In this document: piece by piece, positions 5,603 through 56,643 of the stretch
Position numbering within the stretch: the stretch's first letter is position 1
Layout: each line of letters begins with the position of its first letter
From: Neoconidiobolus thromboides FSU 785
Taxonomy: Eukaryota; Fungi; Entomophthoromycota
Length of the DNA stretch: 64,000 nt
Assembly (NCBI GenBank): GCA_025603075.1
Contig: MU626326.1
Coordinates: forward strand, 1-64,000
Reading direction: 5' to 3'
Made by a program: the position numbers and the translations under genes
Notes under the pieces: generated by a model
Told to the model about the DNA's origin: nothing
Seen by the model: only the letters and a program-made list of their open reading frames with translations
The model's database searches: none

Positions 5603-6208
5603 TCATACATATTTATAAGGATAACTAAAGCTATGAGACAACTTAATAATTTGATTATTGTTTAGTCTATTGAGCATAATTGGTAAATAGTCATCATTCA
5701 CTTTTCTGAAATGATTTTCATAATGCTAATGATTTTATTTTATTTTATTTTTTGGTTATATAATTTTATATTACCTCCAATAAGTGAGTAAAGTGTAGTT
5801 CAGATTGAGGATTCAACCCTTCTATTAAAAATATAGATTTAAAAGTACTCAATTCAATCATAAGTGTATCCAACCTTGCGTGTAACTTTTTTGCAATATC
5901 ATACTTTAAATAGAGCAATAAAAGGGGATAGAGACCTTTTTCTTCAAATAAATAGTAAATTGAAACTACGAAATTTAATACTTTTGTTTTTGTGGAGACA
6001 TGTTATTATTACTTTTTAATATTATGCTATTTAGAAATATAGAGCGGGGAACTTTCTTGAAATCGTCTTTTTGGAAGACTCGATACATATACGTGATATA
6101 ATCATAATCCTTTTTTATCGCAACATCAAATCGATCATCTTTAGAATGGGTATACATCCTATGGTTAAATAAGTTATAAACCCAACTTAAACTAGCATCA
6201 CTTTCCAT
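5603..6208 (-). CDS. Hemerythrin-like (HHE) paralog with substituted metal ligands; introns 5966-6012 and 5726-5774; last exon uncertain
   Basis: Spliced reading MESDASLSWVYNLF...DVAIKKDYDYITYMY...ILKISIYYLFEEKGLYPLL...HYENHFRKVNDDYLP aligns with 7267-7997 and has the same intron positions and phases. Confidence 0.6.
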
Positions 6209-7266: not shown

Positions 7267-7997
7267 CTATTCTCCCAAAATCGGATTATCTGGAGCCAAA
7301 GGGTTAATTCTATTTAAATATTAAAGTGTTAATAAACTATATTTAAAAGATGATACTTTTTGATATCAACCTTTTTAAACTCTAAATACGAGTTTAATAA
7401 AGATCTCTGCTCCTTTTGGGTTAACTCTTTTAAACAGGTTGGCATTTGGTAGTTCTCTTCGTCTCTTGCATGAATTTGGAATTCCTAAATCTAAATTTAA
7501 TTTTATCACAGTAATATATTTTTACATCAATGATTTCATCTAACCCTTTTTCGAACTCGTCACATATACCTTTTTTACCATATAATAGACTTAAATTATA
7601 CATATCGTTGCATAACTTTCGATGCTCTTGAAGCAGTTTCATTGCACTTTGTTCACCAAGAATTTGAAGTAGTACTGGGTATATAATGGTTTCTTCTGTT
7701 ATACAATGTGAGGATACTAATAATTAGTTACTTAATATACTAAACATAAAAAGTCTACAATATTAGATGGTCGAAAATACTTCATGTTAATTTTACCTTA
7801 CTCAATGCTACCATCTCATTTATATATTTCTTTTTCTCTGATTGAGAATTGGACTTTAATTTACTTAACTTATAAAGGTAAATTATACAGTCATGCTCTT
7901 TTTTTATAGCAATATCTATACTTTCTCCGTCTGAATGCTCAAATAACTTTAAGTTAAATATTTCATGTAACCAATTGGAATTATCAAAGGTAGACAT
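7267..7997 (-). CDS. Hemerythrin-like HHE cation-binding protein; introns 7717-7801, 7485-7525 and probably ~7311-7354
   Basis: Spliced reading ...IDIAIKKEHDCIIYLY...LISSHCITEETIIYPVL...LLQEHRKL...EFQIHARDEENYQMP...NPLAPDNP; H, HxxxEE, H, HxxxEE ligand pattern. Confidence 0.7.
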
Positions 7998-8930
7998 TTT
8001 ATATTTTACTTGTATTAAAAAGTATCAAAATAATGTTCAAATACCTTTTATAGTTTAAAAATCTGTAATTTTTATTAACGTAAATAAAATGCAATTGTTC
8101 TAGATAGATCATTGAGATGTAACTTAGTCATAAGTTCAATTTGTTAGTTACATTAAAAATAATATAAGTGCTTATAAAAAAGATCGAAACACTCATGCAA
8201 TATGGTTTGGAAACCACTTATATGAAAATTCTTATCAATTACGACTATATTTATAAAATGAAAAAAGTATAGAATAACTCTAACTTTGTGTCCTCCTTTC
8301 TACTCTGTTAGCGCTTTATCTTTATTTTTATCATTTTAATTGATAATTAGGGGTTTCGTAATATTATAAAACTTTATTGCCACTTCAAAGCCATCCTTTG
8401 ATCACTAATGCTTTTTAAACTAGAGGCTTTGAACTTTACCAGATACATATTTTAAACTTAGTTATTAATAAACAACCATTTCAAATTATTTTTTTATTAT
8501 ATTTTTCGTGAGGCAATGCGATTTTTATTTTTTAATAGTCACCGTTTTGAACATTTATCCTACTTTTTAAAAGGAATAATTTATGTCTTTATAAAAAGCA
8601 TTTTGCTATAACAAAAATTCGAATGTTCTTTAACTCTTTTCTTCAAACATACTCTCATGTCTTTCTTTAGCACTATGATCTTATATATATCAATAATTAA
8701 CATAGAACTTCAATATTAAAAAGTTAATAGCTATTTAAAGAGAAAATAGTGATGAGCAAAGTGATTTTTAGTATTTTAAGTGACAATTACCTACGGTGTG
8801 TTTGTAGGTATTTCAATGAAATTGTTATACAAGCATTAAGAAAATGGAAACAATCACTAACCGTTTGCTCTAGCATGGCTGTTATTTTTATTTGAAATTC
8901 TACTTTATTTAGCTTCAACTTTGAAAATAT

Positions 8931-11804
8931 TTAAAGTTCAAAGATAACGTCTTTAAACAGGTATAAAATACCAGCTCTAGGGGTAGAAATCACAGCCCAA
9001 TTAGGTATATGTTCATTAATCTCTTGAATAGATGGAATGACTTTTGGATCATCATAAGTACATGTAAAACCTAATCTAATAGACTTTCGTGCATTTTTAT
9101 CTTTTAAATAGTCAAAAGACACTTCAAATGGAAAATTGTAGTCTCTTCTCATTAAAATAATTTCATTCTCGTTATAATCGTCTATAGTTAATTCCTCTTG
9201 ACTATTGTTAGAACCGATTGTTTTGATACTAATATTTTTGACATTTTGCTTATAGAAACTCAGTATACATATGTTACTTTTATATGCGTTTAATTGAACT
9301 CTTAGCTTATGCTGATTACTACTTGAAATATTTTCTTTTAAAGTAACATTAATAAGCTTGGAATTCTCGATTGGAAAGGAAGGTTCAGGAGCATTATAGT
9401 AATAAACATACTGACTTCCACTAGGTCTAATTTCTGATAGGGGATTATTCTTTGCAGATGGAATATTATTAATGATTTCTTTTAAATAAGAAGGAGAAGT
9501 AATTGAAGCATAAGAAGTATAGTTACTGTCAAAACTAAATGGATCTAAATTGTCCCTCATTAATTTGCACCCAATGTCTTCCGAAATACATTTATTCTGT
9601 CCAAAATGGTATACCAATGGTGCATTTTCACTTAATGGAAATTTCATTATAGTTAAAATCGAAATAATGACCCATAAACCTAAAAACCTAAATATCATTT
9701 TTAAAGGAATTTTACCAATTAACTTTGGTATCAAATTAACTGATAATAAAGAAGATATTCCTCCCAAAAATGAAATAAAGTAATATACAATTGCTTTTTT
9801 AGTGCCAGTCGGGATCGTTTGTGTTAAGCCTGCAAATGCTGCTATTACTATTTCTTGATAAATCAGATTAGATAGTAGTACGATTAATAATTGTAGTACA
9901 GAATTAAAGACACTACTATTATCATTAGGGGCTTTGTCATTCAATTTAGCATTGCTTTCCTTCTTCTTACCAATACTTAAATTTGGATAATTGTATTTGA
10001 ATATTAAACCATGCGTTGTCGAGTATGCAAAATTCAATAAAGATAGGATACTTATAAAATACAAAGGACCTAATCTTTTGAGCAATACCAAAATATTAAG
10101 AATGTTACACAATAACCAAAATAAGCTATTTGATTGAATTAAAATAGGCTCGATTAAATCAAACTGGCCATTATTTTCATACCATGACCATAAATAGATC
10201 GATAAACTTAAACATGATATTCCAAGGAATGAATAAGACGCAAATATATAATATGAGTAGCTATGCGCTGACATACCTTCTCCAGTAATCCAAAATGCAT
10301 TTGATATCATTGTTCCAGAAATATAAAGTAAAATAGCTAACAAAATAGCAACAAACCCACGAATAATAGGAAACACTGTTAATTTTACAGTTAAAAGCAA
10401 TTTATCATCGTTTTTGTTCAAATTATAATTGATTGTTTTCACTATAATGAACAATGCTGATGCAAATTGTAAAAACGCTAATGCTACGCACAATTTAATA
10501 TATGAATCAAACGAATACACCTTTGAAAAATAACCCAAAATATCGAAAAACACTCCACCATCTTCTGGTTCATTTAGCTTATCAATTTCATTTGAGTTTC
10601 CTAATGAATTGACTGCTGAACATACTGTTTCGCCAAATACTTTGAGAGATTCAAAATAAATTTTGGAAATGTCATCTTTATAAGTATGATAAAATGCTCT
10701 GTTTGAATAGATAGCAAAATCTACTCCTGGGATATTGGCATCAGTATAAATTTGAAAGTCAGTTCTGGAATTAATTAGTCTTAGCTTAAAAGCAGTAAAC
10801 GCGATTACAGAACTATGCGGATGTGGTGAATTCGAAAATGCTTTGTTTATTACACTGCTTGATGATTGAAATAACATTCCTTTATTACCACTACCTGATG
10901 CTTCTAAGTTAATAAATCCCCTAACATCCTTTACCCATTCATGTAATAAAAATGTTCTTGATCCAAACAGCCCTTTTTCTTCTGCCGAATTAAAATTGTA
11001 GATAAAATCAACTGTTTTGGGTGGATTTAATACACTTAACCTTAAAGATTCCAACAATGACACTACTGAGATACCATTGTCACTTGCACCATGACTAGTT
11101 GACTGTGAATCATAGTGGGCAGATAAAAGTAATGCTGGTTTATTATAACTTTTAATAGTATTGTTATTGTTGTTGTCATTTGATAAAGCGAATGAAAGAG
11201 GATGAACTCTTGCTAAAATATTACTTGACTCAAAATAGGAAGCATGATAGACTCTTGGTAATTTCATCTTATTTAGCATCTCTTCACCCAACATATTAGT
11301 ACTACGATCAAAATGAAATTCGATTATATTTTTGTTATGTAATCTTATTGATAATTCTTGTAAGGCTTTGATATAAGATATGATATACTCTTCTACATTT
11401 TTTATTTCATCAGTGTTATATGTATGTACCTTACTACCAAGTCTCAATAAATGGGAATATGCAAAATCAGTATCAAATCCGTTATCTTTTATCAATTCAT
11501 CAAAATTAAACTTATATTTGTAAACGTTATCTTCTGTTTCAATCGTTGATAAACTTATTTTGTTATTTAGAAAATTTTGATGCCAATCTTTCCAATAGCT
11601 TGGTGATTCTTCTGGTAACACTAAAAAGTCAATTGCAATATGAAAAGTAAATAAATAGATTAACACAGTTAAACAAAATGTTATAATTGAAATATTTCTT
11701 CTAAAAAAGCTTGAAATTATATTATCGGGTCCGCTATATTTCTTTTTATCCTCCACCTGCTGATCACCTTTCATTTGATTGTTGACTACTTTACGCTGCC
11801 TCAT
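8931..11804 (-). CDS. PFF1: M28 family membrane metalloprotease (Pff1/ERMP1-like), 957 aa, intronless
   Basis: LLSAHYDS..GASDNG, NSAEEKGLFGS, NLEASG and YHTYKD zinc motifs, N-terminal TM, central multi-TM block. Confidence 0.9.
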   Translation of the reverse strand: MRQRKVVNNQMKGDQQVEDKKKYSGPDNIISSFFRRNISIITFCLTVLIYLFTFHIAIDFLVLPEESPSYWKDWHQNFLNNKISLSTIETEDNVYKYKFNFDELIKDNGFDTDFAYSHLLRLGSKVHTYNTDEIKNVEEYIISYIKALQELSIRLHNKNIIEFHFDRSTNMLGEEMLNKMKLPRVYHASYFESSNILARVHPLSFALSNDNNNNNTIKSYNKPALLLSAHYDSQSTSHGASDNGISVVSLLESLRLSVLNPPKTVDFIYNFNSAEEKGLFGSRTFLLHEWVKDVRGFINLEASGSGNKGMLFQSSSSVINKAFSNSPHPHSSVIAFTAFKLRLINSRTDFQIYTDANIPGVDFAIYSNRAFYHTYKDDISKIYFESLKVFGETVCSAVNSLGNSNEIDKLNEPEDGGVFFDILGYFSKVYSFDSYIKLCVALAFLQFASALFIIVKTINYNLNKNDDKLLLTVKLTVFPIIRGFVAILLAILLYISGTMISNAFWITGEGMSAHSYSYYIFASYSFLGISCLSLSIYLWSWYENNGQFDLIEPILIQSNSLFWLLCNILNILVLLKRLGPLYFISILSLLNFAYSTTHGLIFKYNYPNLSIGKKKESNAKLNDKAPNDNSSVFNSVLQLLIVLLSNLIYQEIVIAAFAGLTQTIPTGTKKAIVYYFISFLGGISSLLSVNLIPKLIGKIPLKMIFRFLGLWVIISILTIMKFPLSENAPLVYHFGQNKCISEDIGCKLMRDNLDPFSFDSNYTSYASITSPSYLKEIINNIPSAKNNPLSEIRPSGSQYVYYYNAPEPSFPIENSKLINVTLKENISSSNQHKLRVQLNAYKSNICILSFYKQNVKNISIKTIGSNNSQEELTIDDYNENEIILMRRDYNFPFEVSFDYLKDKNARKSIRLGFTCTYDDPKVIPSIQEINEHIPNWAVISTPRAGILYLFKDVIFEL

Positions 11805-25684: not shown

Positions 25685-25758
25685 AATAGAAATTTATAAT
25701 GTAAAGTAAACCAATATTTTATTTATTCAAAATAATGAAAAAGAGTATTAATAAGAAT

Positions 25759-25842
25759 CTCACCTTAGCTCAGTTGGAAGAGCGATGGACTGTAAATTTA
25801 ATAGCAATCCATCGGTCCCTGGTTCGATCCCGGGAGGTGAGA
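25759..25842 (+). tRNA. tRNA-Tyr(GTA) with 11-nt intron
   Basis: Cloverleaf CTCACCT/AGGTGAG, D arm GCTCAGTTGGAAGAGC, anticodon stem ATGGA/TCCAT, TTCGATC T loop, T-run terminator. Confidence 0.95.
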
Positions 25843-25930
25843 TGTTTTTATCCAGGATCTATTTTTAGATTCTTCTATAGTAATAACTAATAATAAATAT
25901 AACAATAAAAATTTCAACTCTTTTATTTAA

Positions 25931-27644: not shown

Positions 27645-27693
27645 ATATAGTAAGAATGGATGAAAAAATTAGCATTTAGTCTGCCATTGTATA

Positions 27694-27777
27694 TCTCACC
27701 TCCCGGGATCGAACCAGGGACCGATGGATTGCTATTAAATTTACAGTCCATCGCTCTTCCAACTGAGCTAAGGTGAG
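27694..27777 (-). tRNA. tRNA-Tyr(GTA) with 11-nt intron
   Basis: Identical to 25759-25842. Confidence 0.95.
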
Positions 27778-28164
27778 ATTCTTGTCTTCTATAATTGAAA
27801 AGCATTTTAAATATATATTTAATATTTTTAAGAAATGTGTCAAATGAATTAATAAATATCAATGATGTGGTTTTTAATCTATTATTGATTGATTGATTAG
27901 TTAATATTATTAATTAAACTAGATATATATTATAGATTTTAAGCGGTTGATTTTAATATTAAAATCATTAACATTATTTGTTGATGTATTAATCAAGTCA
28001 CAACCATTGTTTTATTGCTTGATTACATTAAAAAAATTCATAAATTTTGCACAAAATAACCTTGGATTAACCCCAACTTTTAATTATCATAAACATTCCA
28101 ACTGAAATCGGCTTTCAATCTTTCGATAAAAGTTTAACTTTTATAATAAGCTTCTTTTAAAAAA

Positions 28165-34800: not shown

Positions 34801-34896
34801 CTTTTTTACTAAAGAAACAAGAAATATTATAAAATATTTTGAGTTTTTGATTTTATTGAATAAAAAATTTCCAATTAAATTAATTCAAAAATATTC

Positions 34897-34980
34897 TCTC
34901 ACCTCCCGGGATCGAACCAGGGACCGATGGATTGCTATTAAATTTACAGTCCATCGCTCTTCCAACTGAGCTAAGGTGAG
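34897..34980 (-). tRNA. tRNA-Tyr(GTA) with 11-nt intron
   Basis: Identical to the other two copies; TTTTT terminator. Confidence 0.95.
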
Positions 34981-35352
34981 ATTTTTCACTAGCTACATTT
35001 TAGAAAGTTAAAATTTATATAATACTAAAAATTATAAAGTTGTGAATATAAATAAGAAATTTTGGTAATTTTATTTTAAATAATAATATTATTTTTCCAT
35101 AAATTTAATGAAACCAAAATTAAGGAGGAAGTATCTTAACTTCAAATTCTGAAAGGAAATGTGAACACTTAAAGGATTAAAAAAGAACTCTAAAGGGTAT
35201 AGTCATAAGGTTTTTTTAATGAAAAACAAGTATAATAGTTAAAAAATATCCGGAATCATATCAAAGTTATATTTAAGAAAAAAAAGGAATAATAATAATA
35301 CTAAAAATGAAATCGAACTGTAGCTAGGTTAAAAAAATTGTGTGTATTATAA

Positions 35353-41864: not shown

Positions 41865-44264
41865 ATGAGTAAAGACAAGTTACCAACAAAAGACTATCTG
41901 ATAAAGCAGTTGGATACCATGATTAAAGGTCTGCCAGTAAAAAACAAGAAGGTATCTGAGCAAAACGAAACAAAAGAAGGTATTATGGACTTTATATCCA
42001 AAGTGAGGAGAACAACGAAATTAGGTCTTAAAAGTAAGTTAAATCCAGAAAGAGACATAAAGATACTTAAGGGAAGAAGAGGGGACTCAGCAATCAAGAT
42101 ATTATTTAAAAGACTGGATCGAAATAATTTGGAAACAGAATACAGTGAAGTAAATAATTATAATGGTACTACCTCAGCTCAACAAAGAAGAAGTAAAGTA
42201 GAACTAAAAGAGCCTGTAGTTAATAATATTACTACAAAAAGTACAAGAGCAACTTATACAAACAAGCCAAATGATGATCATGCTACTTCTACTCGTACAA
42301 TAAATAAAGATATCTCAAATGATAGGTCAGCTCCTATAGGTAGAACCAAAGTGTCAGAAACTAATTTTAAAAAACTTGGTGAATTTACTATGAAGCCTAT
42401 GGAACGTGTCACATCGAAAACTAGTATAGCTCCAGCAGCCAAAAGAGCCAATATTGATAAAGCTGAAATACTCAATAAGTCTAACAATATTTCATGTAAA
42501 AGTCAACAAGAAAGTAGAAACTCGATGACTAAACCTAGTAGAAGTAGCAATCCATCTAGTAATAAAGGTTATAACGAGGAAAATCAATATTTAAGGCATA
42601 AAAATGAAAGAGGTCCTAATCCTGGGATAGGTATTCAAAATGAAATAACAAATTATGCCAATGGTTATTCAGAAATAAAACAGACAGAAAAGGACAAAAG
42701 GGCACTTGAATCTGGAAGAACAGGTCAAGGCGTTGTTGGAGAAAAGGGTGAAGGTGTTAGATTAGAGTATAACAAACTCCCAAAAATTAAAAAGTTTACT
42801 GAAGAAGCTAAAGCAAGGATTATAACTGAAAAGAAAGAGTTAGAAGGACAAAAAGAAAAGGCAGCAAAAGAAAGATCAAATAGTGGCATTGTGGATCCAT
42901 TGGCACTCCATATCCAAAAGGTAAAGCAACATCCACTTCTAGCTGGTACTAGGAATGCTGAAGTTTTTCATGATGAAAATCAGAGGCAAGATTCTTATGG
43001 TAATAGACTTGATGCTAATTATTACGACGACCCAAGATCTAATATTAATTATAATGCAGGAGGGCCTAATCATAGCCATGACGGAGGAAGATCCAATTCT
43101 AATTATAATGAAGATAAATTTAACTATGATACAGGAAGGTCTAGTTATAATTATGATGAAGGAAGAGATAACTCTGACTATAACGGAGGGAGACCTGTTG
43201 TTAATTATGACGCACCTAGATCTAATACCAATTATGATACAGGAAGATCTAACCATTATATTACAAATAGTAACAGTGGGTCAAGGACTTCTTATCAACC
43301 TCAGCAGGCTTATAGATTGCACGATTCAGACACTTTTGAAAGTAAGTGGGGGAAACCCAAAGTACGTACTAATGCTAACAACTATTTCGCCAACCGAGGA
43401 GATAGAACACCTTATCATGACTTAAATGGTACTCCTAATAATCAACATCATAATGATAATATCAAATCAGGTCTGCACCCAACGGATTTTACACAAGCCA
43501 ACTCAGGTACATATGAACCGGTTTATACTAATTTTTCGTCACCTCATGATGGTGATACTACTAAGTCTGAACAACCCATAAAGTTGGATTATCCAGCTCC
43601 TTTACCAAGAGATACTCCAGAAAATATTAAGTCCCTCTATGAATTGTATCGTGTTAAAGCCAAAGAAATTAAGGATATTAGTACTAAATATGATAAGAGT
43701 TCCAATGAATTTAAATTAGCTTATATGCAAGCTATGTTCTTTCATATTAAATGTATTTCATTTGTTCCACACGCTGATGAAGCTTTAAAGACTGTTTATC
43801 AAGCCCTTCTTTATTGGCAATCTTTATTGCCTACCACTAATTACTTATTGCAAACTACTATTTATCATTCAATCCATCGTCCTCTTCTTCCAGTTTTGTA
43901 TTTAGTTAAAGCAATTATCTATCGTAATATTGTAATTTGTGGGGAAGTATTATTAAACAATAGTGAATATGAAGGCTCAGGGTTGAAAGAAGTATTAATT
44001 GAAGCTTTAGATTTATCACGCAGGTTCTATAGGAGTGCAAGAAAAGAATTTGTAGATTTAGGTAAAGTTAAAATTTACCAACCAGTGTTTGATTTCTTTT
44101 CAGAATCAGCGCCAAAGTATTTCCCTGTCGATTTTACAGCTCAGTTTGATCATGGTTATTTATTCTTCTTTCTAAGAAGTATCTTTACGATTAATATTAA
44201 AACTAGTGGGATTAACTTTGACATTGTACCAGATGACTTAGAAAAGTATCATGTAGAAACTTGA
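41865..44264 (+). CDS. 799-aa protein: basic disordered N-half, NYDxGRS repeats, helical C-terminal domain (possibly AF4/Ebp1-CHD-like)
   Basis: Long intact ORF; the C-terminal Y...AK.IK......AY.QA.FF..C pattern is only a tentative family hint. Confidence 0.85.
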   Translation: MSKDKLPTKDYLIKQLDTMIKGLPVKNKKVSEQNETKEGIMDFISKVRRTTKLGLKSKLNPERDIKILKGRRGDSAIKILFKRLDRNNLETEYSEVNNYNGTTSAQQRRSKVELKEPVVNNITTKSTRATYTNKPNDDHATSTRTINKDISNDRSAPIGRTKVSETNFKKLGEFTMKPMERVTSKTSIAPAAKRANIDKAEILNKSNNISCKSQQESRNSMTKPSRSSNPSSNKGYNEENQYLRHKNERGPNPGIGIQNEITNYANGYSEIKQTEKDKRALESGRTGQGVVGEKGEGVRLEYNKLPKIKKFTEEAKARIITEKKELEGQKEKAAKERSNSGIVDPLALHIQKVKQHPLLAGTRNAEVFHDENQRQDSYGNRLDANYYDDPRSNINYNAGGPNHSHDGGRSNSNYNEDKFNYDTGRSSYNYDEGRDNSDYNGGRPVVNYDAPRSNTNYDTGRSNHYITNSNSGSRTSYQPQQAYRLHDSDTFESKWGKPKVRTNANNYFANRGDRTPYHDLNGTPNNQHHNDNIKSGLHPTDFTQANSGTYEPVYTNFSSPHDGDTTKSEQPIKLDYPAPLPRDTPENIKSLYELYRVKAKEIKDISTKYDKSSNEFKLAYMQAMFFHIKCISFVPHADEALKTVYQALLYWQSLLPTTNYLLQTTIYHSIHRPLLPVLYLVKAIIYRNIVICGEVLLNNSEYEGSGLKEVLIEALDLSRRFYRSARKEFVDLGKVKIYQPVFDFFSESAPKYFPVDFTAQFDHGYLFFFLRSIFTINIKTSGINFDIVPDDLEKYHVET

Positions 44265-44516
44265 TTCTAAAGTTAAAAGTTGGATTTTTTGTACAAGAAC
44301 TTTTAATAGGAATCTTTTTATGAGCTTGTTTAATTAATCCTATTGCTGTTTTATTAAATTGTAATATTATTGTATTTGTTATTTATAAATTTGAATTTAA
44401 CTAAAATATTTATTTGATGTCATTTTAAAACATAATATCATCTATTAATATTGAAAATAACCTAATGATAATTTAATATTTATAAAAATTAACCCTTTAT
44501 TAATAGCTTGATTATT

Positions 44517-44678
44517 TTAATAAGTAGGACATGGTAAAGTGGTGGTAGTGGTAGTATAAGTGGTAGTGGTACTAGTTACGTAGGAAGTAACATCCTTGCA
44601 TCTTTTAGTATAACCATAACCATAACCTTGAGCAGCAATAGAAGTAGCAACGACAGTGATAAAGTAAATGAATTTCAT
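44517..44678 (-). CDS. 53-aa secreted peptide precursor 1: MKFIYFITVVATSIAAQGYGYGYTKRCKDVTSYVTSTTTTYTTTTTTLPCPTY
   Basis: Translated by hand; conserved in two nearby paralogs; TATAAATA on the minus strand at 44742-44749. Confidence 0.82.
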   Translation of the reverse strand: MKFIYFITVVATSIAAQGYGYGYTKRCKDVTSYVTSTTTTYTTTTTTLPCPTY

Positions 44679-45902
44679 AGTTGGATATATTGTTTTGACT
44701 TGAAGTTTGATTTTTAATATTAATGTTGATATTTTCTTTGCTATTTATATACCAGTTTTTGCTATACAATAATTAAAAATAAGCCACAGATTTTCGTACA
44801 TTATCAGCATAATTAAAAATAATTATACTCAACTCAATTATAAGCCTAATAATTTAAATATATTTAAAGCTATAACAACTTGAAAGTTGTGTGTAGTTAA
44901 AGAAAACGATAATTTTAAATGGCATTAGATATAGTAAGGGCTCTTTAATATGATTATAGATAGTAAAATAGCACAGTTTTAAATCGTCTATCTATCAAAG
45001 CCTGATATTTAAGCATGTGTGAGGTTAAAAGAAAGTTAAAACTCAAATATTTTTCCTATTTGGTTTAGATTTAAACTTATAAAATTATTAAGGCCAAAGA
45101 AAAACATAAGAAAAAACAATTGGTGATTGTAGCTATTTTAAAATCCTTGAGGAGTTTGGGGGATATGTCTTTATTTCATTTCATTATTATTTTAATTAAT
45201 TTAAAATTTAAAAAATCTTACCATTCCTTTGCAGAAAACAATGCTTTTATTTTAGTGTTTATGCTAATTTACTTTTTTTGGAATAATTTAAAATCGGTAA
45301 AGTTAAGCCTTGTATTTAAATTAACCTACAAGCAAACCGCTTGAGCTCAATTAAGCCCAGAGCAAGTACTCCAAAACAATAGGGTTTTGATTAAACAAGA
45401 ATATCTTTTTATACTTGCACATTATATTAAATATTAAAGTTTCTGAATGCTATAAGTGATTTTCCATAAAAATAATTACTTTTAGAACTATCAGAGCAAA
45501 TCCACAACTAAAACTTTGTATGATACCTCATGACTGCACTGTTATATACATTACAAATGCCATTGCCTCTATTTTAATAAACACTAATGGTACCAGATGA
45601 GCAATAAAAACCATAGTGATCTATTATTTCAACCTAAGATATCATTGTAAAAATTTTCATATTTCCATATTAAATTTGTGATTATTTAACAAGTTTGAAT
45701 TGCTGTAGAGGTCATACCTTGATATTTTTAAACCTAGTAATTTTAAAAATATTAACTTTAGTATCTAATTAAAGTAATAATATAGTAGTAGTAAGTTTTG
45801 AATGCTAGTATTACATTATAACATATAATACAGCTATATATAAAATAAAATAAAAAAGTAGTTGTTTAAATTTTCTGATGTTTTATTAATAATTTGGTTA
45901 TT

Positions 45903-46058
45903 TTAATAGGTAGGGCATGGTAAAGTGGTATTAACGACAGTATAAATGGTCGTGGTACTAGTTACATAGAAAGTAACATCCTTGCATCTTTTAGTATAGT
46001 CGTAGCCTTGAACAACGATAGAAGTAGCAATGACGGTAATAAAGTAAATGAATTTCAT
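45903..46058 (-). CDS. 51-aa secreted peptide precursor 2: MKFIYFITVIATSIVVQGYDYTKRCKDVTFYVTSTTTIYTVVNTTLPCPTY
   Basis: Frame, KR, both Cys and the stop are conserved versus copy 1; TATAAATA at 46121-46128. Confidence 0.8.
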   Translation of the reverse strand: MKFIYFITVIATSIVVQGYDYTKRCKDVTFYVTSTTTIYTVVNTTLPCPTY

Positions 46059-46522
46059 AGTCAAATGTATTATTGTGATCTAAATTTGGTTCCTTTTATG
46101 TTTTATTAATATTTTATTCTTATTTATACATCACTTTTTCTATAAGATTGCTTTTAGTTCCTAATTTTTATTGTCCAAATACTAATATAACAAACTTATT
46201 TTCTGCTTAAATTTAGCTAATCTATTTTGCACACTATTAGCATAATTAATTGAATTGGCAACTTATTTCAAGCCTAAAAAACGACTTTAATTATGTAAAA
46301 ATAAAGATAAACAATAGCATTAAGTGGGTTAATGAATACAAAGCTCGCCAACCTGAGTTTATATATTAATCTAAAGTATCTCTTTATAAAAAATCCTCTC
46401 GTACCATAGTAATTTAATCTACACATCCACTAAAGGGAGTTAAGCCCAGTTTGGTAGCTGTAAACGACTGCTAAAAAGCTAGAGTATATAAGTTCGTAAA
46501 TATACTAATATATCATTGAAAA

Positions 46523-47062
46523 ATGAAATACATCTCTCTCTTAGTATTTATCTACTTATCAAAAGGTATTGAATCTGCTGGCTATGCATATGGTTGTCGT
46601 ACAAAAACTACTACTTCCACATCTATCATAGCAAGCACTTCAACTAGAACTTTGACCATAAAGCCTACAAACTGTCCTGTTCCATGTACTAAAAACACTA
46701 TTACTTCTACTTTAACAGAAACATATGTTGGTACCGAAACCAAGACTGAAACTGTAAAACCAACTGATTGTCCTGCTCTCTGCACTACACAAACTGTTAT
46801 TTCCACCTTGATCGAAACTTCCACTGACACCAAGACTGAAACCGTAAAACCAACTGATTGTCCTATCCCATGCACTACACAAACTATTACTTCCACCTTA
46901 ACTGAAACTACTACTGGAACTAAAACCGAAACCGTAAAACCAACTGATTGTCCTATCCCATGTACTACACAAACTATTACTTCTACATTGACAGAAACTA
47001 GTACAGCCACTCAAACAAAAACAGTTAAAAAAGTATATTGTTCTAGAAGAAGATACTACTAA
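46523..47062 (+). CDS. Secreted Thr-rich protein with four ~30-aa TVKPTDCPxPCTTQT repeats, 179 aa
   Basis: Signal-peptide-like N-terminus, ~90-nt tandem repeats at ~46650-47030, TATATAAG at ~46485; no hydrophobic GPI tail. Confidence 0.9.
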   Translation: MKYISLLVFIYLSKGIESAGYAYGCRTKTTTSTSIIASTSTRTLTIKPTNCPVPCTKNTITSTLTETYVGTETKTETVKPTDCPALCTTQTVISTLIETSTDTKTETVKPTDCPIPCTTQTITSTLTETTTGTKTETVKPTDCPIPCTTQTITSTLTETSTATQTKTVKKVYCSRRRYY

Positions 47063-47539
47063 ATAAATTATTGAATTCTCTATTTTGTATGTTTTAATTA
47101 TTATAAAGATTTATCAAATTTTAATATTCCATTAGCTTTTATAAATTCAATGACTGAGATAATTTACATAATGCTTAATATCTAAATATCAAATATATTA
47201 GTCATTTTTAAGAACATGATAAATGGCTACTTATAAACCATGTATTTGTTTCCCAAATGACTTAGGTTTAGATAAAACAGCTCCTTATTTATATGCTGAA
47301 TAGTATATTGTATGACATAATAATTATTGCTCAGCTATCAAAAGATTCTTCTCTAGCTCTAACGGTGTGAAAGTCACTCCTCAATCACTTTTTCTTACCA
47401 TTTCATACTCTTTAAATCGAATAAATACTATCTACTCCTTTGAGCCCAAGCTTTTCAAAAAAAAATAACTACATTGTCTAAAAAACAAAATAAGTCAATT
47501 GATTAAATTTTTCTGGTGCCTTATTAAAGATTTGATTAT

Positions 47540-47701
47540 TATAATAACCAAGGCAAGGTAAAATGGTAGTAGCGGTAGTATAAGCGGTAGTGTTACAGTT
47601 GCGTAGGAAGTAACATCCTTGCATCTTTTAGTATAATCGTAGCCATAATCTTGAGCAGCAATAGAAGTAGCAACGACAGTGATAAAGTAAATGAATTTCA
47701 T
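47540..47701 (-). pseudogene. Peptide precursor 3 with a 1-nt deletion frameshift
   Basis: MKFIYFITVVATSIAAQDYGYDYTKRCKDVTSYAT, then ACT-GT where copy 1 has ACT-AGT; TATA box reads TACAAATA (47765-47772); 3' end approximate. Confidence 0.75.
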
Positions 47702-48341
47702 AGTTGGATATATTGTTTTGACTTGAAGTTTGATTTTTAATATTAATGTTGATATTTTCCTCACTATTTGTAAACCATTTTTTCTATGTATTTGTAACCT
47801 CAACTCATTATTAAGAGCTAGAATTAGTATAATCAATAACCTTTAATCTTTTTGATTTAAATTACAGTTGAAACTTTGTTGTGACTTTTTTTAGCAATGG
47901 TTCTTACGTTTTTTATTTATATAGCCAATTTTTTTAAGACCTAGTCTATATATCAAGTAAATTTTATTACAAAGTTATTTTTTAAGTGAGCAGTTGATTA
48001 GGTCGGATAAGAGTTGCAGCAGCTGTAAGGTATCTATTTTTATACAATCCTGGCATTCAGTTTTTAAAAACTATTTGGACTTTTTTAAACAAGTGATTGC
48101 CAGTATTATTAATTGCGGCTATCAACATAAACATAAGTTTATAAAAAACTAAATGATATAGTTGAAAATCAAATATGTTTTTATGTTATTATTGCTTTTA
48201 TTAAAAAACTTTAAATTTATTACACATATATAGTTGTTATATAAAACTATTGCTTTAAAGTTTGTCATAATAAACACATTGATTAAAAACTCAGCTATAA
48301 CACTTATTAGTTACCTTGTTTTATATATTACAAACAGCATT

Positions 48342-48440
48342 GGGGACGTATTTTTGTGTCTAAGAATTTTACTACCAATTTTTCAGCTTAAATAGCGCTT
48401 AGAAAATGGAAAAAATAATGAAGTCAAAAAAAACACTCCC
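48342..48440 (+). mobile_element. ~99-bp MITE
   Basis: Family consensus. Confidence 0.88.
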
Positions 48441-48479
48441 ATTATATTTTTAAAATAAATTAATACTTTTAGTCAAATA

Positions 48480-48890
48480 TGTGAAATGTCGCTTTGTCAG
48501 CTCCATGATTGATTATAACATAAAAACCACCTAAGTTGTTATGTTCTCGAGTTCGGAGGCAATTAATCCTATGCTCTTAGTTTGATTTGCTATGAGAATT
48601 TCTAGCTTCATCCCAAATAATATTAACATCTTATTTTGATATTTGCACTTATCAGAATATAAAAGAAGCTTTAGGACATAGTAGCTCAAGGCCTTTTAAC
48701 TGGATTATTCCCTGATATCTCGTACATTTAATAAAGCCACTGAATTTTCTTAGTAGTATTTTACGTAGATTTTACAGTAGTATTGTCTATTCTGTTTGTC
48801 TTACATGGATTATGAATGATAGCAAGTAATATGCTATAAACCAAGTCTATCTTAGCCACACAAACTAAGACCTTTCGACTTACAGCATAT
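48480..48890 (+). mobile_element. Diverged solo LTR, 3'-truncated by the Sola-like insertion
   Basis: TGTGAAATGTCGC start; colinear to ...TTACAGCATAT, then the transposon TIR. Confidence 0.8.
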
Positions 48891-56276: not shown

Positions 56277-56349
56277 GCCCTTGTAGTCTAATGGATAAGA
56301 CGTCGCTCTCCTAAAGCGGAGGTTGCAGGTTCGAGTCCTGCCTGGGGTA
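56277..56349 (+). tRNA. tRNA-Arg(CCT) with imperfect acceptor stem
   Basis: Anticodon arm TCGCT-CTCCTAA-AGCGG, T arm GCAGG-TTCGAGT-CCTGC, acceptor GCCCTTG/CTGGGGT; T-run terminator. Confidence 0.85.
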
Positions 56350-56643
56350 CTTTTTGGATATTTTATTTTGTTAAGGAAAATTTGTATGCTATATAGCTAA
56401 ATGCTCTAATGCTAATATTGAAATATATGTACCAAGTATTATACAATTAGAGTATAAAAAATTGCTCTTATACAAATTAAGTTTGAAATTACTAAACTTA
56501 GTTATTATTTAAAACCTATATCTATTTTGGATATTTATTATAAAATCGAAAAGCTTATATATGTAGTTGAATGACTTGGTTAAAATTTACAAATAGGATT
56601 ATATTAGATATAAATAGAATCAATAAATTATACTTGATATAGA

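Follow-up and report, generated by a model that had tools for sequence, protein, structure and literature searches.

Unannotated monomer genes and their head-to-head polymer partners in Neoconidiobolus thromboides: a putative two-branch family of secreted Thr-rich precursors

Gene organization of the locus

The window analyzed here is a stretch of 64 kb (64,000 nucleotides), the beginning of contig MU626326.1 (100,690 bp) in assembly GCA_025603075.1 of Neoconidiobolus thromboides FSU 785, an entomophthoralean fungus of the Zoopagomycota that is pathogenic for aphids and is used in biocontrol research. It has a GC content of ~26% and carries ordinary fungal genes for a Pff1-type M28 protease, MTHFR, Per1 and PLD. 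It also contains a cluster of three short open reading frames (ORFs), referred to here as monomer copies 1 to 3, for none of which the genome record holds an annotation, and a gene for a larger Thr-rich protein, referred to as the polymer gene (Table 1).

The three monomers share a 16-residue hydrophobic leader, called by inspection, followed by a Gln residue, a Tyr/Gly(Asp) head of 6-8 residues including this Gln, the dibasic KR, the sequence Cys-Lys-Asp-Val-Thr and a Thr-rich stretch. The two Cys residues are separated by 22 residues in all three copies, copy 3 being counted with its broken codon masked, and the second Cys is followed by Pro-Thr-Tyr in copies 1 and 2 and by Leu-Gly-Tyr in copy 3. 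The predicted mature monomer comprises 35-38 residues, reaching from the Tyr/Gly head to a C-terminal Tyr or Tyr-Tyr. An earlier note on this DNA had described three paralogs with a 16-aa leader, a Tyr-rich head, KR and a C-x22-C loop, the same spacing in the frame-repaired copy 3, and a common motif upstream of both intact copies; all of these sequence statements were reproduced, and the motif, TATAAATA, was located 63-64 nt before the ATG. What did not hold is that the cluster stands by itself, as it is part of a family of monomer and polymer genes scattered over the genome.

Four positions of functional importance set copy 3 apart from the other two copies. The loss of one base between 47596 and 47597 breaks its frame, TAT (47541-47543) takes the place of the stop codon, the TATA-box position is altered and AATAAG replaces AATAAA. 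Moreover, a 110-nt block of 5' untranslated region (UTR) and leader is identical between copies 1 and 3 (44616-44738 and 47639-47761), while outside of this block 27 of 154 aligned columns differ (p ~5e-7), which fits a gene-conversion tract between an intact and a decaying gene. Judged from their sequences, the three ORFs in the window are two functional genes and one decaying copy that form the monomer branch of a family with two branches.

The second branch is represented in the window by the polymer gene. Its product has a leader, a GYAYG head joined directly to the first Cys, five Thr-rich segments within ten Cys residues (C-x25/27-C-P-x-x-C) and an RRRYY end, and the 3' half of the gene contains approximately three tandem units of 90 nt. 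Copy 2 and the polymer gene are arranged head-to-head with 464 bp between them. Approximately 40 kb of the genome were read outside the window, and four further monomer loci with three distinct sequences were found on three other contigs (L002, L003 and L004), each of them head-to-head with a polymer gene at intergenic distances of 609-723 bp. The pair occurs once at the end of L002, once at the end of L003 and twice in tandem on L004. L002 and L003 share a cassette of 1,481 bp that is 99.5% identical (8858-10338 on both contigs), and the flanks of the cassette differ. The family comparison covers six monomer loci, L002 and L003 being counted as one, and four polymer loci. In the polymers on L002, L003 and L004, a YYGGYNP head is followed by one or two segments bracketed by Cys and by a long tail rich in Thr, and the chain ends with Tyr; taken together, the polymer branch has two to five Cys-bracketed Thr-rich segments, or a long Thr-rich tail, behind a Tyr/Gly head. 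Tblastn found no polymer remnants beside copies 1 and 3, which are both solo. Since the Thr-rich repeats seem to break the assembly, the copy number of the family is probably underestimated.

The gene models in GCA_025603075.1 miss most members of the family and mis-splice or truncate others. The model P0007 (L004 7435-7707) splices away the true C-terminus, the plain ORF ending in ...TCPTVTYY, and P0006 (L002 10001-10293) is a polymer that is cut by the end of the contig and closed with an invented intron.

Transcription signals

Both intact copies in the window have TATAAATA before the ATG and AATAAA ~16 nt past the stop codon (Table 1). When the six monomer loci are aligned, a TATA-type motif occupies the same place in each of them, reading TATAAATA in copies 1 and 2, TACAAATA in copy 3 and TATAAAC on L002 and L004; the polymer gene in the window has its own element, TATATAAG, and in the head-to-head pairs generally monomer and polymer each have a TATA box. 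In a window of 26% GC, TATAAATA is not significantly enriched (39 found vs. 31.5 expected), and therefore only its conserved position counts as evidence. Between the two monomer subfamilies the flanks are unalignable except for the TATA-type motif 65-85 nt upstream, an A three positions before the ATG (-3) and, past the stop codon, a signal of the AATAAA type. A conserved regulatory motif was looked for in the divergent intergenic regions; these align only among the recent L002/L004 duplicates, and the window shares just the TATA boxes with them. The divergent pairing suggests that monomer and polymer might be co-expressed.

Table 1. Coordinates of family members and associated signals; window positions refer to the 64-kb stretch.
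Feature	Sequence	Position	Strand	Description
Monomer copy 1	window	44517-44678	minus	intact, 53 aa: leader, QGYGYGYT, KR, C-x22-C, PTY
Monomer copy 2	window	45903-46058	minus	intact, 51 aa from MKF start at 46058: QGYDYT, KR, C-x22-C, PTY
Monomer copy 3	window	47478-47701	minus	decayed; ATG at 47701; QDYGYDYT, KR
Polymer gene	window	46523-47062	plus	179 aa, annotated in NCBI record
Divergent intergenic region, copy 2/polymer gene	window	46059-46522		464 bp; each gene with its own TATA element
TATAAATA	window	44742-44749	minus	64 nt upstream of copy 1 ATG
TATAAATA	window	46121-46128	minus	63 nt upstream of copy 2 ATG
TACAAATA	window	47765-47772	minus	TATA-box position of copy 3
TATATAAG	window	46485-46492	plus	TATA element of the polymer gene
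AATAAA	window	44496-44501	minus	16 nt past copy 1 stop; likely polyadenylation signal
AATAAA	window	45882-45887	minus	downstream of copy 2 stop
Monomer	L002/L003	9119-9277	minus	identical unannotated 52-aa ORF on each contig
Monomer	L004	5608-5772	plus	54-aa ORF, unannotated
Monomer	L004	7435-7599	plus	54-aa ORF, mis-spliced in record as P0007

Conservation and selection

The monomers on L002, L003 and L004 repeat the architecture seen in the window: the leader stops in front of a Gln, a Tyr/Gly head and CKDVT are present, the two Cys are again 22 residues apart, and Pro-Thr is found as well as Tyr-Tyr at the C-terminus. The -3/-1 positions of the leader are occupied by S/A/T and A in the L002 and L004 copies. 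Invariant in all five intact monomers are Q17, C-x22-C, P-T and the terminal Tyr. The ratio of non-synonymous to synonymous substitution rates (dN/dS, omega) is 0.26 between copies 1 and 2 and 0.06-0.2 in comparisons with or among the paralogs on other contigs (copy 1 vs. L004, ~0.1-0.2). Between the L002 monomer and L004A there are 15 synonymous and 8 non-synonymous changes (omega 0.13), and 8 vs. 2 in the part encoding the mature chain. For the window copies against those on L004, the proportion of synonymous differences (pS) is 0.68-0.75, i.e., saturated, at a proportion of non-synonymous differences (pN) of ~0.3, and against L002 pS lies above the correction limit of 0.75; the codons used for CKDVT itself differ between the two subfamilies. 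Although synonymous sites have reached saturation between the subfamilies, the protein, the Cys spacing and the terminal Tyr were kept, and the monomers are real genes under purifying selection. Homologs were also inspected for a dN/dS near 1 and for a loss of the Cys spacing, which the earlier note had named as the outcome speaking against its proposal, and clearly neither was found; its view that these ORFs are genuine secreted-type precursors gains support from the low dN/dS values as well as from the invariant leader end, loop and Tyr. Furthermore, ACC makes up 42% of the Thr codons in the monomers and 23% in the polymers, compared to 9% for a background of seven ORFs (p = 3e-8 and 3e-4), which hints at codon adaptation. 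An apparent diversifying selection on the loop (omega of 1.3 for copy 2 vs. copy 3) was discarded, as it rests on very few changes and involves copy 3, a pseudogene.

With this in mind, the reading of the ORFs as non-functional or never expressed, i.e., as remnants of a repeat family or pieces of polymer genes, has only a slight chance of being correct. It can draw on the missing annotation of the window ORFs, of the L002/L003 monomers and of the L004 monomer at 5608-5772, the L004 paralog at 7435 being the only one modeled and mis-spliced at that, on the visible decay of copy 3 and on a same-species RNA run (X1, see below) that has no reads on the genes. However, the dN/dS values are well below 1 at saturated synonymous sites, and ORF, leader, Cys spacing, TATA motif and AATAAA are conserved across four contigs. 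An open frame of 53 codons has a chance probability of ~0.9% per copy in the base composition of the window and is kept by five diverged paralogs, and one paralog was considered a gene by the annotators as well (P0007). Taken together, the monomers very probably constitute a real gene family of the secreted type, and two of the three window ORFs, although lying under annotation cut-offs, are clearly selected genes.

The dibasic site and processing by Kex2

The KR between head and loop is present in five of the six monomer loci. The exception is the L002/L003 paralog, which is intact and strongly constrained and reads Q-G-Y-G-R-P-C, the RP representing no Kex2 site. Moreover, a dibasic site between the Tyr/Gly head and the first Cys is missing from all four polymers. 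In every member the first Cys has basic residues around it (KR-C-K, RP-C-K, C-R-T-K, C-R-P-K/R), and the KR may thus belong to a conserved basic patch. Because the conserved L002/L003 paralog has RP and the polymers have no dibasic site, the release of a Tyr peptide by Kex2 cannot be the principle conserved throughout the family. The most parsimonious reading would assign the Tyr head to the mature protein, and the KR would be at most an optional processing site, at which cleavage in some members is possible.

This bears on the proposal of the earlier note that each precursor yields two functional products, a pyroglutamate-capped Tyr-rich 6-8-mer acting as signal or cross-linker and a disulfide hairpin. 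Such a processing is possible for some members but lacks support as core mechanism of a family that includes the RP paralog and polymers devoid of a dibasic site. The Gln following the leader is invariant, KR occurs in most copies and the number of xY units differs among them, as would suit a released peptide. However, around the KR the P4 position is Tyr and P1' is Cys, the head differs in every copy and is reduced to QGYG in one conserved paralog, which is more in keeping with a spacer or a cap that stays attached than with a specific ligand, and among the ORFs scanned no receptor or modifying-enzyme gene lies nearby. Each precursor has one core and no repeats, so that it is not a Kex2-processed repeat protein (KEP; PMC6339444). 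Overall, we regard the two-product model as very unlikely.

By definition, a KEP contains three or more repeats of a motif with KR, RR or KK sites between them (PMC6339444). The KEPs, including the Ustilago Rep1 repellents and precursors of the alpha-factor type, resemble the monomers in being secreted precursors with KR, the signal peptide being recognized by inspection in the hydrophobic 16-aa leader, and the Rep1-type peptides are likewise surface-active, wall-associated products. The monomers, in contrast, have a single KR and no repeated core and therefore fall outside the KEP definition (PMC6339444), and the modules of the polymers are separated by C-P-x-x-C instead of dibasic sites.

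An unlikely alternative is that the monomers are pro-peptides resembling the effectors with a Kex2-processed pro-domain (K2PP). Kex2 would cut after KR in the late Golgi, the Tyr/Gly head would be disposable and the disulfide-closed Thr-rich loop of 27-30 residues would be the sole active product, a soluble effector, antimicrobial or insect-directed peptide. The K2PP effectors (SnTox3, ToxA, SIX1/4/6) likewise begin with a signal peptide and a brief disordered N-terminal segment, followed by KR and a mature part that contains Cys, and the K2PP in-silico filter (bioRxiv 10.1101/2020.05.27.120113) selects copies 1 and 2 and both L004 monomers. The presence of KR in five of the six monomer loci and a head that varies in length (4-8 residues) in front of a conserved loop are in line with such a cleavage. 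The filter does not select the L002/L003 monomer, which has RP despite strong purifying selection, nor the polymers, in which the Tyr/Gly head is kept without a dibasic site. In addition, the pro-domain of the monomers would comprise just 6-10 residues, P4 is Tyr instead of an aliphatic residue, P1' is the bracket Cys itself, and the mature part is a two-Cys Thr-rich loop of low complexity and not a folded domain as in the K2PP effectors.

Search for relatives

The searches for relatives did not lead outside the species. No match above threshold was found in Pfam and no relative among the PDB profiles. A HMMER search with the window polymer against 1.84 billion proteins returned five matches, of which one, P0006 from the same species, is genuine and the other four (P0002-P0005) were dismissed as low-complexity noise. 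A word-indexed profile search with the monomers had P0007, again from the same species, as its sole match, and both annotated paralogs belong, according to the record, to the same assembly and carry the name Neoconidiobolus thromboides FSU 785. A word-indexed protein search in a collection of 5.8 billion proteins with copy 1 and the polymer as queries gave no match, the polymer itself being absent from that collection, and two JGI metagenome scans with monomer and polymer profiles returned chance patterns only. The impression of the earlier note that the architecture does not correspond to a known family agrees with these results from Pfam, PDB and the protein collections. Judged by these comparisons the family has a new sequence, which has been seen to date in Neoconidiobolus thromboides alone. 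In a protein language model, the named proteins closest to it are adhesins and wall glycoproteins of fungi; the scores are low and are taken as mere leads. AlphaFold2 predictions have a mean predicted local distance difference test (pLDDT) score of 51.6 for the monomer and 36.4 for the polymer, values that would be typical of mucin-like chains of low complexity in an extended or disordered state; the models are uninformative and too poor for a comparison of folds.

Small secreted proteins of orphan status are the rule in zygomycete secretomes, and those of the Zoopagomycota are dominated by small secreted proteins without known domain (PMC9391592). Almost none of these small orphan proteins of the Zoopagomycota has been studied.

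Comparison with structural and cross-linked proteins

The protein kind to which the family belongs, mucin-like, secreted and possibly trimmed by Kex2, is already known; distinctive are the constant 22-residue span between the bracketing Cys, the capping with Tyr on both sides and the repeated pairing of a single-unit with a multi-unit gene. The Ser/Thr-rich wall mannoproteins and adhesin stalks (Tir/Dan, Fit, Pga and the Thr-rich region of Als) share with it a signal peptide and a Thr-rich, beta-prone and probably O-mannosylated chain. They differ in that the family shows no sequence homology to them and has neither a glycosylphosphatidylinositol (GPI) signal nor a PIR repeat but regularly placed Cys brackets and a Tyr cap at each end, and in that the monomers are far smaller (35-38 residues in the mature form). 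As to the GPI signal, the C-termini are hydrophilic (mean Kyte-Doolittle value of -1.0 to -1.9 for the 15 final residues), with Y or YY at the very end. The pattern of eight Cys residues typical for hydrophobins was not found either, as there are two Cys per monomer and no Pfam match.

Plant extensins with their YxY motifs and the Tyr-rich precursors of the Eimeria oocyst wall are structural proteins cross-linked via Tyr. The family resembles them in having YxY-type motifs at the ends of secreted, glycosylatable chains rich in hydroxy-amino acids, which suggests a Tyr coupling of the peroxidase or P450 type; there is no homology, the kingdom is a different one, and for the Neoconidiobolus thromboides family cross-linking is purely inferred. 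In Conidiobolus obscurus, 28 DIT2-type P450 genes are annotated and putatively tied to dityrosine formation during maturation of the conidial wall (PMC9026835), and this expansion in a related Conidiobolus is considered here as context only.

A Tyr-rich core might also be modified in another way. In precursors of RiPPs (peptides made by ribosomes and altered post-translationally) of the dikaritin type, oxidases would cross-link the Tyr-rich core after its release by Kex2, and a short Tyr-rich core followed by KR superficially recalls the ustiloxin- and asperipin-type cores (compare in part PMC7329392). The monomers, however, have a single head, i.e., one core and not many per precursor, the conserved part is the Cys loop and not the core, and no gene with a UstYa-type/DUF3328 domain or for a tyrosinase was found among the ten longest window ORFs scanned. 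We attribute next to no probability to this explanation.

Proposed function and its uncertainties

With confidence little more than even, the monomers and polymers are most likely surface or matrix glycoproteins and not a new peptide-signal system. The 16-aa leader would direct entry into the endoplasmic reticulum and be cut before the invariant Gln, which may cyclize. The two Cys would close a 24-residue disulfide ring over a beta-prone Thr/Val/Tyr segment, and one disulfide per module fits the even Cys counts of two of the polymers, i.e., ten in the window polymer, where five closed loops are possible, and four in the 192-aa L004 polymer. O-mannosylation is general for Ser/Thr-rich sequences in the fungal secretory pathway, and the Thr runs would be heavily modified in this manner. 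The products would pass the secretory pathway and end up in the wall or in an extracellular coat of hyphae, conidia or resting spores. A terminal Tyr is present in all nine intact members seen, and the presence of Tyr at both ends suggests that oxidative (dityrosine-type) coupling or aromatic contacts might link monomers and polymers. If the products indeed build or decorate the spore or hyphal surface, they would have a bearing on adhesion and wall hardening in a lineage without hydrophobins.

Several points weigh against this interpretation. Localization, glycosylation, disulfide formation and Tyr cross-linking are all deduced. The homology between monomers and polymers is weak, if plausible (hhalign 87.7%; tblastn E ~1e-4), and rests on approximately 28 N-terminal columns. 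The retention of KR in five of six monomers may itself reflect selection for cleavage, and its tally is limited to six monomer and four polymer loci. Moreover, the same-species RNA run X1, which is tiny (16 million letters), covers none of the genes. Of the 31-mers sampled from the transcript predicted for copy 1 (44470-44720), 45% are present in another run, X2 (2021), the RNA type of which is guessed and which is labeled with another organism than X1. They might stem from a transcript, or X2 might be from this species, listed under a different name.

A more elaborate and quite unlikely version of the glycoprotein reading would be a two-component extracellular material in which Tyr-capped, disulfide-closed Thr-rich hairpins, jointly expressed from divergent promoters, are coupled via their terminal Tyr residues or beta-stacked and coat the forcibly discharged conidia or the resting spores. 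The single-module proteins might act as chain caps or fillers for those with several modules, and the material would be an entomophthoralean functional counterpart of the layers formed by hydrophobins, repellents and adhesins. If the products indeed build or decorate the spore or hyphal surface, they would have a bearing on adhesion and wall hardening in a lineage without hydrophobins.

Further observations in and around the cluster

Run X1 assembles to a single contig in this part of the window, 178 nt in length (47130-47307; depth 3.4), which is the only piece of the 3.7-kb region present. It is located where the 3' end of the polymer gene faces that of copy 3, in the spacer, and shows no obvious ORF; possible sources are a short transcript that lacks annotation, an extended 3' UTR and carried-over DNA. 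An Rfam search over 44000-48500 had no match, and a scan for bacterial promoters and terminators gave matches at chance level, which are irrelevant in a fungus.

The cluster is adjoined by an ORF of 799 aa (41865-44264) with a repeat tract rich in Asn, Tyr, Asp and Gly, which is without Pfam domain and forms a singleton cluster in a collection of 15 billion proteins. Finally, three tRNA-Tyr(GTA) genes are located within 9 kb (25758-25843, 27693-27778 and 34896-34981), their length of 86 nt suggesting the presence of an intron, and a tRNA-Arg(CCT) gene is present at 56277-56350.

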